Positions 2,381 through 34,424 of a DNA stretch of 64,000 nt are shown in pieces. The notes under the pieces are model-generated. The model was not told the origin of the DNA, did not search any database, and saw nothing but the letters and a program-made list of their open reading frames with translations. Both the position numbers and the translations under genes were made by a program. The stretch lies in the NCBI RefSeq assembly GCF_902652985.1, contig NC_047032.1:13144001-13208000 (forward strand), in the 5' to 3' direction. The first letter of the stretch is position 1. Every line of letters starts with the position of its first letter. The DNA is from Pecten maximus (Eukaryota).

Positions 2381-2713
2381 GATTTATTCTGTTGAGTATA
2401 TCTGATCTCACCGAAGGGCCAAGAGGGCCAACAGGAACTTTGGGAATCACCGGTTCTACTGGAGTTGCACCAACAGGATTAACTGGTCTAACTGGTACAG
2501 CTAATACAGTAACTGGTTTAACTGGAATGACAGGGCCAACTGGAGATACAGGACCAGGTATAACCGGTGCAACTGGTACAGCGAATACAGATATCTGGTG
2601 CAACTGGACCTACAGGATTTAATGGAGATGCAGGACCAACAGTTACCGGCGCATCTGGCACAACTGGTGCTACCGGTGCAACCGGCGCAACTGGTGTTGC
2701 AGCCTCGGGATAA
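2381..2713 (+). pseudogene. Gene A: terminal exon of a Gly-X-Thr collagen-like protein, with a +1 frameshift at ~2591
   Basis: Acceptor tattacag|GA is identical to paralogs B and C; near-identical to 33805-34136 except acagAtatct vs acagtatct; TAA at 2711-2713; AATAAA ~2751; upstream exons not seen in the window. Confidence 0.8.
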
Positions 2714-3214
2714 GAGTGCGAAAAAATACCTTGTGCCAGGTAGACGGACAAATAAAAGATTTTCCCCCATTTCTCGTGTTATGTTTTTGTTGATAGTATG
2801 GAGATATTTCATTGGTTTTATTTTCAGAATATAAAACAGGTAGTATAAGTGAAGGAGATAAACTATCTCAGGGTCAACAATGAGCATTTGCTACCTAAGG
2901 TCAACATGCATGTATTTTCATTAAATTCCACAAAATTCAAAACAACGCCAACATATATTGTTTCTTATTTATAAAAGTATTTCCATTTGTGCTGATATTG
3001 TGCTGTTCGATGTTGGTAAAAATATACTTACAAAATACATCAAAATTCACTTGATAACGGGAAATAACTTAATTATCAGGAGTCTGGAACCAACTGAAAA
3101 CTGCACGCGGTACTGCATGTATATCACAGTTTTGTATGAGTGGGAATATGCTAAGTCTTTCTAGCTAGTCATTAACATTACACTTAATCATCGCCCAACT
3201 ACAGTTTGATTACT

Positions 3215-3385
3215 CTTCGATCGGAAATGAAAATGTATGGGGTCACTTGCCCGACCACATGGGTTTTCTCCGGGCTCTCCGGTTTTCTCCCCCTCAAGCT
3301 CTTCCATCCGAACCAATAAAAGTGATATATTAAAGTTGGTAAAGTTTTATACGCGTTTGTTGTAAAATAATAAAGTTTATATTTT
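3215..3385 (+). mobile_element. Old V-domain SINE (family 2), partial
   Basis: gggttttctccgggctctccggtttt V-domain motif; paralogous copy at 21170-21400 in the same position of the duplicated gene unit. Confidence 0.65.
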
Positions 3386-4247
3386 GTATTATTTTGTGTA
3401 GCAGCTTAGCGTACGTTTACTCCATTAGCATCTATATATCAGATTTTAACTGTCCGCCAAACAGACAGCTTTAAATATCGTGCTATATAATTTATTTGTC
3501 ATGTTCAGATGCAGTATTTGATATTGTAATACACGTGTGCTTCACCACTTACATGCCGCTTAGAAGGAATATTGCGCAAAAAATGCAAACTTTCCTATTG
3601 GTATGCCGCAATCAGCACTAACGATCATTTGTAAATCGATCTTGCTAGATATATGAAGAATCTATACAAATTAAACATAGTATATATCATATATAGAGCA
3701 TAGGTTATCCGCAGGTAAAAGTTCACCTGATCACAGATTCTAGATTATTCGGTAAATACACGAGTTTTTACGTTATTCAATTTCTTCCTGGATCGCAAAT
3801 TAATTTCTTTATTCACTTAATTTCTGTCAATTTGATCATGTACACCAATTTTTCAGCTAATACAGCACAAACATTTGTACATGTTATTGCACAATTAGCA
3901 CTAGCGAACGTTTGTACATGGATCTAGCTAGATCTATCAATAATCCCCGTAAATTTAACATTACAATTTTGTTAATATGAAAGATTGAATCGTACGATTT
4001 CCATTAGAACATACATAGTATTTCAAAAGAGTTTTCATTTAATATGTTTTTTTATTAAACGAGTCTAAGAAGTATTTTTTTAATTATTGCAAGAAGCCTT
4101 GGCGAGAAAAAATAAAACTTCGAGACGACAAAACAGCGTGGTATGAAAACAAAGTATAACGTGACAAAGCATGAAATGTACTGATGTATTTTTTCATTCA
4201 TTGTGTAACTTATTTTCTCATAAAACTAGGTTATGCCGAAACGTATA

Positions 4248-30365: not shown

Positions 30366-30472
30366 TATATAAAAGGCCACAGCTGATGACATCACATTTG
30401 TCAGTTCCCTTCTCGCCGACTTGGAGACCTGATCCTACCAGGTTTACATTTTGATCAGACAGCTCGGTAAGT
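30366..30472 (+). promoter_or_regulatory. Gene C core promoter (TATATAAAAGG), Inr-like TCAGTT and non-coding exon 1 ending at 30466
   Basis: TATA 30366-30376, TCAGTT 30401-30406, donor CG|GTAAGT 30467; block conserved with 11740-11920. Confidence 0.7.
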
Positions 30473-33052
30473 AATGCTTCACATATGGTGTGTATATTTA
30501 AGGATTGAATAATGTTATGTTGAGGTGTATGGGGGTGTAAACCTGGTTAATACTTTTAGGATTTCTTTCGTGAACAAACTTAATAGCGAATTAAAACAAA
30601 TGTTAGTTTTAAAGGAATTTATTTCATATAAATATGATCACTTTTGAAAAGAAATTAAAAAAATTATAGTCCAAGCTCAACAAAGGTATTCCTACGCCGG
30701 ACTTGATATAGTTCATTGAAAAATGACTCGAGTTAATTGTGGTAGGTTCATTGAGTCTGAATTGAGTGGAAATATAAATATTTGAATGTAAAATGAATGT
30801 AAAAATAACTTTATATCTTAACTTAGTGTCTGAAACAGTATATGCAGATAATTAAAGGAATTAATACATTTATATGATACATCATCTTCTTTGATGCCAC
30901 CCTCTAGGATGACATTTGCTTTACAAAATGAAATGTTCCCAATGTTGCTGTTATTTTTTTTTTTTTTTAGATCACATATTTGTATAATTTTAACATCTAC
31001 ATGAACATTTATATCCATTTTTGCATTTACGGGCATTTGTTTTAGATACTGAATTTTTGAAGTATTGAAATAAAAATACTGAGATCCTGACATTTTTATC
31101 CATTTTACTTACATTTAGGCGTTTTTGGGAAGCATAACTAAATAAATAGGTAAATAAAATTATATCATACAGCCGTTCCCTTTGTCAAGGACTCGTTTGT
31201 GATGGATAGTTGTAAAGACATCAAGAAGGAAATCCTAAAGAAACAGTTAAAATATATAATTATTAGCAATTTAGTTTGAAATATTTTGGGATGTGGCATA
31301 AATGTAGTAGCCTGGAATGTTTAGTTTGTAACATTGTTATCAGACGGTAGACATGGTAGGATAACATCTTGGGGAGTTTGACACCAATGAAGCCAATTCT
31401 AAATAAGATTAGTTTGATGTCATGTCCTTTCGACAACTTTTTTAGGATCAACATTGTCACATATCTATCCAATATTTTCTTTTGTAAGAAATGGCTGCAT
31501 ACTTTTATCACATATGTCGGCCAATATGAATTTAATTACATATGCATAACATGTAAGCGTATCTTATATATCTACATTTAGTATGCATGAAAGTATTGGC
31601 CAGAATTGTTTTCGTTTTTTTTTTTCTAAAAAAACATTGGCCTCATCACAGTGTGTAGTAATGCCGGGTACCGCGTTACCCCAGGTAGTACTCTCCGACG
31701 TCGGATTTTGTTTTTCTAGTGTTCTTTCAAATAAATACGATTCATGTTAAATTAACGGTCTCCTAAATGTCCAAAACATAAAAAAAAAAAAATCACACAG
31801 AATAAGTGTCGTAGATGAAACTACATTTTGTTTGTGATGTTGTCATTTGCTAAGACCATGCCAAGATATCTTTTCCACGAAACGGCTGTTCTCTCTCCGT
31901 CGTTACTCCCGGGTAAAAACACGAAGATCATGCTCTTTTTTATCATTTATTTATAAGGAATAAATTTCATTTTTCACCCTTTTTTCTGGATATATTTACT
32001 GGAATATGTCTAGAAGCCAAATGTGTTATGACCTCATGAATGTTAAAAAAAATAAATGTCATTCCTTAAGTAAACACCAGTAGCTAGTATGATACAATGT
32101 GATACCACATAAACCCTACATATATACAAGTATCTAGTATGATATAATGTAATGCTATTTTACAGTATGTAAATACCAGTATCTGTATTGAATATATTTG
32201 TATTCCATAGCGTTCATACCACCGTAAACGCAATAAAAACACCGTTCAATAAATATATTGACATCAAACAATTCGTTGCTAACATAATAAAGTTCCAGTA
32301 AATCTAAATAAAGACACCGGTATTGTTTACAAAATTAAAAGAAACAACTCAACATTTTTGCTTGATACATTTTACGTTTTCAGTTTATTAATCTATTCAC
32401 AATTTCTGTCTCGCATTAACTAGGTTGTCAAGTACAGCGGGTATTGACACAGTGTCAGTAGTGACGTGGTCGATTTTTCTATAGGAGCTGTAGGCTTCAG
32501 ACATTTGTTGTTAGCTTACCTTGTGGAGAAGATAAACATTCGCTCATTTCCGCAATCTTCAGTTTATTTTTGACAAAACCCTCAATTAACATAAGTTTTG
32601 TGTACAGAGATCATCGGATAACAGAAGAAAACGCTAAAATTGCGTAGATCAGTCCTTTGAAAATGGCGCCGTCTAGTTGACGTTCCGATAACGTCACAAC
32701 GAGACGACGTCATGATTATGTTACCGATTCCCGCGCTTATTAATCCGCTGATCCTTTTTTTCACTGCTTTACGCTAATTTTAGCGCAGTTAGTTTACAAA
32801 GCTGAAGAAAGAAGAAATGTAAATATAATGTATTATTATGTCAACCCTTCTTTTTCTTTCAGTTTCTATCTTTAAAAGAAAAGATATTTCTGTTAAAACT
32901 GTCTTGAACAATTAAATCGCATCACTTTTGCTGGTTTAAGAAAAAAATGTACATTATGATGGAGTGATCTTTGAGAATGAGGGTTAAAATCCCAGCTTAT
33001 CCAATACATTTCGAATTGTCATGTTATTGATGCTGGTATTTGCTTTCAGATC

Positions 33053-34136
33053 ATGGCCACGCCGGGAGACCTCGTCCTACCACCGGGGGAAGGGCTAACT
33101 CTGCCATTATTTACCACAGCTGCCTTATCTGCCGTGTTGAGCTTCGGCTTTGGTATGCGTCACTTCATTTACGTCATAATAAACAAGAAATATCTTTAAA
33201 AAGATAAACGGCATAGTTTTAATGCTAGTGGTTATAATGTAAAACTGCTGGTGAAATAAATTAACGAAGTAATAATACATAAATGTACGTTTCAGCACGG
33301 TTAACAAAATTATATCAGTTTGAATCATTTTGGTGATAATGAAACTGCATTTGAATCAGGAATATCATTTTATTAATGTGTCATTTGAAAAGATACATCT
33401 ATTTATTCATCTTGCATTCAATCTTAATTTTGTTTCGTTTTTAATTGCATAACTGTATTTTGCATTTACCGCTACTTTGACCAATCACATACTTCATCTT
33501 GACCAGTAACGACGCCACCTGTCGCGTCATATCCGGGACCAAAAGAATATTATACGGCTATGCCGAAAAAAGACACGAGTATTTCTCCCATACATCACAT
33601 TTTAATCTCCGAATATACAGGACATTCACTACACTCCTATCTTTACACTTCATCACGTAGTCTTTCTGGAACGCGTATTATTATTTAATTCACCATTAAA
33701 CATTATCATCCTAAGAGAGAAGTGACGTATTGTTTTGACTTCCTACAAAGTATACTTGTGATGAGAATCAATTACATATGCTAAATATCATTGCTGTATT
33801 ACAGGAGTTATTCTGTTGAGTTTATCCGATATCAACGAAGGGCCGCGAGGGCCAATAGGAACTTTGGGAATCACCGGTTCTACTGGAGTTGCACCAACAG
33901 GATTAACTGGTCCAACTGGTACAGCTAATACAGTAACTGGTTTTACTGGAATGACCGGGCAAACTGGAGCAACAGGACCAGGTATAACCGGTGCAACTGG
34001 TGTAGCGAATACAGTATCTGGTGTAACTGGACCTACAGGATATAATGGAGATGTAGGACCAACAATTACCGGCGCATCTGGCACAACTGGTGCTACCGGT
34101 GCAATCGGCGCAACTGGTGTTGCAGCCTCGGGATAA
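33053..34136 (+). CDS. Gene C: spliced CDS join(33053..33152,33805..34136), 143-aa membrane-anchored interrupted Gly-X-Thr collagen-like protein
   Basis: [34 protein letters not shown]|[18 protein letters not shown]...; canonical phase-1 GT-AG intron; TAA; AATAAA ~34189. Confidence 0.85.
33181..33570 (-). mobile_element. HINE/DINE-1-like (Helentron-associated) non-autonomous element in the last intron of gene C
   Basis: Subterminal IR CGGCATAG/CTATGCCG plus terminal hairpin ATCTTT..AAAGAT, with A/T-rich ends; second copy at 57405-57728. Confidence 0.65.
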
Positions 34137-34424
34137 GAGTGCGAAAAAATACCTTGTCTGAGGTATATGGACGAATTGAACGTCTTTAAATAAAGGATTT
34201 GTTTGCATTTCTCGTGTTCTGTGTTTTGTTAATATTATCATAGTAGTGATGGAGATTGTCATTTCATTGTTTTTACAGTGAATACAACAGGTAGTATAAG
34301 TGAAGGAGAAAAACTATCTCAGGGTCAACAATGAGCATTTGCTACCTAAGGTCAACATGCATTATTATCATCAAATTCTACAAAATACAAAGCAACGCCG
34401 ACAGATATTTATTGATTTATAAGA

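Follow-up and report, generated by a model that had tools for sequence, protein, structure and literature searches.

Collagen-like repeats have been described in several systems in which the chains are either held at the membrane by an N-terminal hydrophobic segment or built of triplets rich in threonine. In the MACITs (the vertebrate collagens XIII, XXIII and XXV, and COL-99 of C. elegans) a short N-terminal tail is followed by one hydrophobic segment and by the extracellular collagenous region, and folding is thought to begin at the membrane end. The cuticle collagens of nematodes are encoded by small genes arranged in tandem clusters, and most of them are predicted to be type II proteins by means of an N-terminal hydrophobic segment; a type II anchor is described both for the majority of the cuticle collagens of C. 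elegans and for the MACITs (PMC10538796). The BclA-type exosporium and phage tail-fibre proteins, instead, are made of Gly-X-Thr triplets, lack hydroxyproline (Hyp) and change in length via repeat slippage; a recent survey reported that Thr triplets are enriched in bacteria, archaea and viruses, an excess that the collagen-like proteins of eukaryotes do not show, and that the peptide (Gly-Pro-Thr)10 forms a triple helix only if galactosylated, being a random coil when unglycosylated (PMC11923368). Among animal collagens, that of the cuticle of Riftia pachyptila depends on glycosylated Thr, and not on Hyp, at the stabilising Y position (PMC11766948, PMC11923368). Here we report on a family of small collagen-like genes of the scallop Pecten maximus, which shares traits with each of these systems. 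Three copies, named A, B and C, are located in a stretch of 64,000 nucleotides (assembly GCF_902652985.1, contig NC_047032.1, positions 13,144,001 to 13,208,000 of the forward strand; hereafter, the window). We lean towards the view that the products are minimal, probably type II membrane-anchored, collagen-like homotrimers, likely relying on glycosylated Thr.

The window has the composition of AT-rich eukaryotic DNA and contains three Gly-X-Thr-rich open reading frames (ORFs) on the + strand, in A (2392-2622), B (20355-20681) and C (33816-34136). A preliminary description, made from the letters alone, had proposed that these are the last exons of three paralogs with a common layout. The self-comparison of the window confirmed the paralogy and the common flanks: between C and A the identity is 87% over 692 bp, among the acceptor regions of the three copies it is 91-92%, and among the 3' flanks 74-77%. 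The motif of the exon carrying the ATG occurs three times (at 18186, 19211 and 33050), against 0 occurrences expected, and the splice sites of all the proposed junctions are canonical (donors G|GTAAGT and G|GTATG; acceptors TTTCAG| and TTACAG|). When splicing and translation were scripted, B gave a product of 146 amino acids (aa) and C one of 143 aa, exactly the range anticipated. The genes consist of a non-coding exon 1, of an exon 2 including the ATG and ~34 codons, and of an exon 3 for the remainder; intron 2 always interrupts a Gly codon, in phase 1, and the polyadenylation signal AATAAA starts 52 nt past the stop codon in B and C, and 37 nt past it, at 2751, in A. The features of the three copies and the location of the other members of the family are reported in Table 1.

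Table 1. Features of the collagen-like gene copies in the window and position of the paralogs in the genome of P. maximus (window coordinates unless a contig is given).
Feature	Location	Strand	Remarks
A, ATG exon	contig C18:13143344-13143445		good splice sites; 556-657 bp upstream of window start
A, conserved block at 3' end of intron 2	2314-2380	+	aligned in all 11 paralogs
A, last exon, collagen-like	2381-2713	+	+1 frameshift near 2593-2597; AATAAA 2751-2756
B, promoter block and non-coding exon 1	11728-11890	+	donor after 11890; 75% identical to C 30307-30499
B, duplicate ATG/hydrophobic exon 2a	18186-18291	+	within tandem duplication
B, ATG/hydrophobic exon 2b	19211-19316	+	ATG 19214; aligns with 9 other paralog exons
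B, conserved block at 3' end of intron 2	20278-20343	+	paralog alignment
B, last exon coding sequence, ~32 Gly-X-Y triplets	20344-20681	+	AATAAA 20734-20739
C, promoter block	30307-30413	+	TATA-like box 30366-30374; paralog alignment
C, non-coding exon 1, part covered by RNA contigs	30414-30466	+	in-frame TGA upstream of ATG
C, ATG/hydrophobic exon 2	33050-33152	+	ATG 33053; spliced contigs, 4 runs
C, conserved block at 3' end of intron 2	33738-33804	+	paralog alignment
C, last exon	33805-34205	+	coding sequence to 34136; AATAAA 34189-34194; longest RNA contig ends at 34205
9-bp minisatellite (GGATCAACA), ~16 copies	34425-34646	+	directly downstream of C
Paralogs A, B, C	contig C18	+	window copies
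Paralog D	contig C8, 6.996 Mb		
Paralog F	contig C8, 7.159 Mb		
Paralog K	contig C8, 7.179 Mb	-	
Paralog E	contig C8, 7.201 Mb	-	
Paralogs G, H, I	contig C11, 6.099, 6.115 and 6.143 Mb		
Paralog J	contig C321		unplaced 51-kb contig

The expression of copy C was followed in public sequencing runs. A search keyed on its exon 2-exon 3 sequence returned 20 runs from 9 studies, under one coded species label, and 13 of them, of RNA or undetermined kind, contained 26-36% of the sequence words, which is about the exonic share of the stretch. The RNA contigs of four runs, each from a different study, were aligned to the region 30100-34500. The junction 33151/2>33804/5 was present in all four runs and the junction 30465/6>33049/50 in three of them, both with GT..AG borders, so that the two splicing events foreseen for C (30466>33050 and 33152>33805) are directly observed. 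The longest contig, of 578 nt, joins exon 2 to 52 nt of exon 1 on one side and, on the other, to exon 3, which it covers as far as 34205, 11 nt beyond the AATAAA. Coverage was also seen in intronic bins (30544-30783 and 33181-33570) and consisted of short pieces running into unrelated sequence, which indicates that these are dispersed repeats. C is a transcribed, spliced and polyadenylated gene. Compared to the genome, the RNA contigs showed seven differences at coding sites, two synonymous and five nonsynonymous; none of them led to the loss of a repeat Gly or to a frameshift.

To find further copies, the P. maximus assembly (918,306,378 bp, 3,983 contigs) was searched with exon 2, with the acceptor region and with the paralog D. 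At least 11 last exons, on four contigs, share the acceptor block and a start of the type LL..D..EGPRG, and eight of them are intact (B, C, D, E, F, H, I and J). Exon 2 was located for all the copies but K. A promoter/exon 1 block, ~75% identical and with an invariant GTAAGT donor, accompanies 9 of the 10 copies examined, K included; upstream of I and of J no such block was found. The alignment of the block spans 8 paralogs. The C-terminal tails vary considerably, being absent in C and in H/I, Pro-rich in D and J, made of PPTT repeats in E and ending in RRGRRGR in F; summing the exon lengths, the product of E reaches up to ~175 aa. At its 3' end, intron 2 retains in 11 of 11 paralogs a block of ~67 nt, which is more conserved than the coding repeats and may be an element for the control of splicing or transcription; a basis in RNA structure was rejected (-1.9 kcal/mol, no covariation). 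On the whole, this is a three-exon, tandemly duplicated and fast-evolving family of protein-coding genes.

Two of the window copies turned out to be less simple than initially depicted. A, for which only the last exon had been recognised, does have an ATG exon, which lies just upstream of the window start. Moreover, its paralogy stands, whereas its integrity does not, since one extra nucleotide compared to C, near 2593-2597, shifts the frame; past this point the old frame is an intact Gly-X-Y repeat up to the same stop as in C, which suggests that the break is young, allelic or an assembly slip. As regards B, the two alternative acceptors indicated for exon 2 (18186 and 19211) are both canonical and are explained by a 1,028-bp tandem duplication (17437-18465 / 18465-19490, 99.1% identical), which doubles the ATG exon. 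Exons 2a and 2b have an identical predicted peptide and, counting from the exon lengths, splicing in both would break the frame; the duplication could be real or an artefact of the assembly. The exon 1 of B also has an out-of-frame ATG at 11822, opening an upstream ORF that overlaps the main ATG, where C has ATT. The TATA-like box of C is missing from B.

Several lines of evidence indicate that the family encodes proteins. In C an in-frame stop is found six codons upstream of the ATG, and in 10 of 10 genomic copies of exon 2 the start has the ATC-ATG-G context and is followed by M-A-T-P-G-[DG]-F. In the last exon of the eight intact paralogs, L3, L4, D8, E11-G-P-R-G15 and 21 Gly columns are invariant, and 15 of the 21 Gly columns use more than one synonymous Gly codon. 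Pairwise dN/dS values, calculated by Nei-Gojobori among the paralogs, were 0.43-0.63 for D-F, B-C, D-B and C-D (dS 0.65-0.86), 0.70 for H-B (dS 0.53), and ~0.4-1.0 in young pairs; in a rough test of pS versus pN the difference was ~3-4 standard errors for B-C and D-F. From these substitution patterns, purifying selection is weak yet real, on a protein that evolves fast. An alternative is that the copies are transcribed with no functional protein, the ORFs being by-products of 9-bp minisatellites in a duplicated gene that is non-coding or decaying. In fact, the coding repeats are 9-bp tandem arrays (in the last exon of B they span 20421-20552), a similar non-coding array lies directly 3' of C, the antisense frame is open too, three copies are broken and some pairs have dN/dS near 1. 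Nevertheless, the ATG exon, the intron phase, EGPRG and the Gly columns have been kept across dS of ~0.6-0.8, the dN/dS of diverged pairs is well below 1, the variants in the RNA contigs cause neither frameshift nor Gly loss, and the copies retain their own conserved promoter; we regard this alternative as very improbable.

The predicted proteins have a simple organisation. The family alignment of exon 2 shows a conserved N-terminus of 10-14 residues (MATPG[DG]F..), followed by a hydrophobic segment of 19-27 residues, split by the phase-1 intron, that leads straight into the collagen domain. The best mean of Kyte-Doolittle hydropathy over 19 residues is 1.85 in B and 2.05 in C, and the first Gly-X-Y triplet comes ~8 residues past the segment. 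The junction between anchor and repeat is the invariant D..EGPRG, after which ~30 Gly-X-Y triplets and a short variable tail are found. When the exons were examined with Pfam, exon 3 matched Collagen (PF01391) with 58.6 bits in B and 30.7 in C (gathering cut-off 27.2), the ATG exons of B and C gave no match and the repeat exons no domain besides Collagen, as it had been supposed. In B and C the domain is 98-100 residues long, Thr occupies 15-16 of the regular Y positions and Pro at most one, and the composition count gave zero Cys in both products. The repeat of B is the more regular: 29 of 31 Gly-Gly spacings equal 3, with uninterrupted runs of 14 and 16 triplets, and Y is Thr in 16 of the 29 regular triplets and Pro in 1; at the single Gly-to-Ala break, a GLT adds one further Thr at Y, which reproduces the earlier count of 17 of 32 triplets. 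In C, 21 of 28 Gly spacings equal 3, and the breaks include some of 5 and 7 residues. The preliminary picture of a tandem family, in which a hydrophobic segment at the N-terminus is combined with a collagen-like domain rich in Thr and poor in Pro, thus holds.

Whether these chains would fold as a triple helix was evaluated by modelling three copies of the exon 3 of B. The model scored 0.44, against 0.00 for the best of three controls, and displayed a staggered helix with Gly-Gly contacts (among the solved one-chain pairs 21 of 30 attain the mark of the model, among single chains 0 of 23); the runs agreed on at least 84% of the contacts, the pLDDT of the partners was at least 66, and the interface was a single continuous one, over residues 9-107, tightest at Gly. 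This pass may, however, reflect the memory of solved collagens. A different possibility is that the proteins are translated and form no triple helix, being either disordered, mucin-like O-glycosylated stalks or polyproline-II (PPII) bundles like those of springtail antifreeze proteins. The Gly register of C is often broken, Pro/Hyp is nearly absent, the ESM Atlas models D as a single chain with low confidence (pLDDT 0.31), and, as mentioned above, (GPT)10 without sugars behaves as a random coil (PMC11923368). On the other side, Gly at every third position is invariant through synonymous changes, which would be needless in a mucin stalk, the runs of 14 and 16 triplets in B exceed the short strands of PPII bundles, and the three-copy model of B passes its controls; we consider such a fold improbable, although less so than the absence of any functional protein.

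The hydrophobic segment may also be read in another way, that is, as a signal peptide removed by cleavage after ..LLSLS or ..LSLT, upon which chains of ~100 residues would be secreted into an extracellular matrix (the organic matrix of the shell, periostracum, ligament, byssus or mucus). Small uncharged residues at -3/-1 precede the invariant Asp, B and C have no basic cytosolic tail, the variable C-terminal tails, Pro-rich or basic, as PPTT in E and RRGRRGR in F, resemble those of secreted matrix proteins, and about one third of nematode cuticle collagens have ordinary signal peptides (PMC10538796). By contrast, the length of the hydrophobic segment (19-27 residues) is great for the core of a signal peptide and typical of an anchor, the conservation of MATPG[DG]F is unexpected in a peptide to be discarded, and the cleavage would leave no trimerisation domain. 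Secretion seems to us unlikely, but it is the alternative to be taken most seriously.

In the membrane-anchored reading that we prefer, the hydrophobic segment would be an uncleaved type II signal-anchor, and three anchors would hold three chains in register. The membrane-proximal GPR-GPx triplets would nucleate the helix; GPR ranks among the most helix-favouring triplets. From here, the collagen helix might zip from N to C, generating a cell-surface rod of ~28 nm (100 residues x 0.286 nm), whose stability, without hydroxyproline, could derive from glycosylated Thr together with the low body temperature in cold water. As for the role, our guess is that the proteins contribute to the surface coat of an epithelium or to an apical matrix. 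In D and E basic residues are present on the N-side of the hydrophobic segment, fitting an N-in topology. The most ambitious form of this proposal, a minimal eukaryotic membrane collagen of ~145 residues devoid of trimerisation domain, cysteine knot and hydroxyproline, in which the transmembrane helix and the EGPRG clamp nucleate a Thr-glycosylated, 'bacterial-type' Gly-X-Thr triple helix in a rod-like, rapidly diversifying scallop surface coat, is possible rather than probable.

Some observations weigh against this proposal. The evidence for the family lies at the level of DNA, RNA and models, and it is from these that we infer that the proteins are translated, how they are oriented, that they form trimers and are glycosylated, and what they do in the animal. 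Around the hydrophobic segment, the charged residues of B and C (D6 on the N-side; D, E and R on the C-side) give no clear positive-inside signal and leave the orientation ambiguous, and SLS|D matches a signal-peptidase site with small residues at -3/-1, hence a cleaved signal is possible. The five interruptions in the ~28 triplets of C would weaken a triple helix, and the complex model may recognise any Gly-X-Y string. Moreover, 3 of the 11 copies are broken (A by the frameshift, G by two TGA, K by many stops), dN/dS is near 1 in some young pairs (1.00 for E-F), and an open frame alone proves little, because slippage of 9-bp units does not disturb the reading frame and, with this composition, the opposite strand is open as well.

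The comparison with the described systems helps to place the family. The MACITs share its predicted general plan, but are several-fold larger and have a juxtamembrane coiled-coil, several COL/NC domains, furin sites and Hyp-type triplets; the scallop proteins have a single collagenous region, no coiled-coil region and no other Pfam domain, a furin-type RXXR is not present between anchor and collagen, the junction D..EGPRG having a single Arg, and no similarity to MACITs outside Gly-X-Y was found in Pfam and word-index protein searches. Nematode cuticle collagens have Col_cuticle_N, Cys clusters and an RXXR furin site, none of which occurs in B and C, where reading the sequence reveals no dibasic site between anchor and repeats. 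The Riftia cuticle collagen is very long, secreted and endowed with globular domains, compared to ~145 aa and a predicted anchor here. Bacterial and phage collagen-like proteins are the top matches in every repeat-driven search; however, at the C-terminus they bear globular trimerisation domains (BclA_C, DUF4183 and Mtd_N, among others), and they have no such N-terminal anchor, whereas the scallop products end 0-35 residues past the last triplet, with no C-terminal domain. In addition, spliceosomal introns and polyadenylation signals set the scallop genes apart from those of bacteria and phages, as does the TATA-like box of C. By analogy, the family would work most like a stripped-down membrane collagen with a triplet chemistry of bacterial type.

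The searches for relatives were run exon by exon, and the database protein of paralog D served as full-length member. With queries close to the anchor (residues 1-40 of B exon 3 and residues 41-95 of D) the word-index protein searches matched only D. The proposal that the family is lineage-specific is based on protein-database searches, in which no anchor-bearing relative was found outside P. maximus, the genomes of other molluscs being beyond their reach. A profile of eight last exons retrieved phage and bacterial collagen-like proteins in a protein search, and none of the 13 matches examined had an anchor of the family type. phmmer with D gave 24,363 matches; the best 150 were all of at least 459 residues and aligned on the repeats only, and since orthologs below ~126 bits would fall outside the best 150, this search is uninformative on small relatives. 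Its top named matches are proteins of candidate-phyla-radiation bacteria, aligned again on the repeats only, which points to a compositional likeness, and the ESM Atlas, queried with D, returned only phage tail-fibre or collagen clusters (at most 0.85). Taken together, the similarity to bacterial and phage proteins is compositional and gives no evidence of transfer.

Of the eight intact members, only D has a protein record, XP_033747956.1, annotated as 'sericin-1-like [Pecten maximus]'; in the last exon it shares 58% identity with B, and its exon layout matches. The products of B, C, E, F, H, I and J are evidently absent from the protein collection, as they would otherwise have topped the searches. 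The identity of D as a sericin was rejected, because its repeats are Gly-X-Y with Thr/Ser, and not Ser-rich repeats of 38 residues, and its Pfam record is Collagen only; 'sericin-1-like' is an automatic low-complexity label. The RefSeq model of D also carries an N-terminal extension of 40 residues out of exon 1, which is impossible in C owing to the in-frame stop; in the exon 1 of B no in-frame ATG was found in the 91 nt examined. No description of the family or of XP_033747956 was found in the literature searched, which agrees with the surmise that the family was possibly undescribed; however, D was already in RefSeq under its uninformative automatic name. By Pfam, the family belongs to the collagen-repeat superfamily.

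To our knowledge, this would be the smallest anchored collagen layout. Standard annotation largely misses the family, with one of eight intact members recorded, and under a misleading name. If triple helix and anchoring are true, the nucleation of the helix without a dedicated trimerisation domain becomes testable in ~100 residues, and so do the substitution of glycosylated Thr for Hyp in an animal and the role of such rods on the mollusc cell surface. The family would represent the use, by an animal, of the Thr-triplet chemistry that the survey links to bacteria, archaea and viruses (PMC11923368).

Other Thr-rich repeats were observed in the same genome. An ORF at C16:21562136-21562471 (- strand) begins with MATGPTG and has ~40 GPT-type triplets, a hydrophobic segment and repeats of the type LLNGTYYLRN; having neither the acceptor block nor the anchor, it was rejected as a twelfth member and is a separate gene. 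On contig C9 there are giant unbroken Gly-X-Y ORFs, at 36032367-36041796 (2,421 aa) and 35998151-36001120 (1,131 aa), with Thr as the commonest residue at Y, which indicates that Thr-type collagen-like proteins are widespread in this genome, beyond the small family. Directly downstream of C, the minisatellite at 34425-34646 resembles the GST-coding array of B, and one of its frames reads as a decayed GST/GPT collagen-like stretch; from this resemblance, it is perhaps the relic of a repeat exon.

As to the surroundings of the copies, C is adjoined by Polinton-like genes (36672-42862), including a protein-primed type B DNA polymerase with an Endonuclease_7 region and an rve integrase with chromodomain, together with a weak match to an A32-like ATPase. 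A horizontal origin of the family from this neighbouring element or from a phage was set aside, given the introns, the eukaryotic signals and the four separate clusters. Between B and C, at 22707-24485, there are ORF fragments resembling a LINE-type endonuclease and reverse transcriptase, for which Pfam gave no match at E<=0.01. Two satellite arrays were also found: the first (46094-47461) has a unit of 10/19 bp, extends for ~1.4 kb and shows a strong GC skew, and the second (48192-51227) is composed of a 41-bp unit, with a higher order of 123 bp, over ~3 kb.

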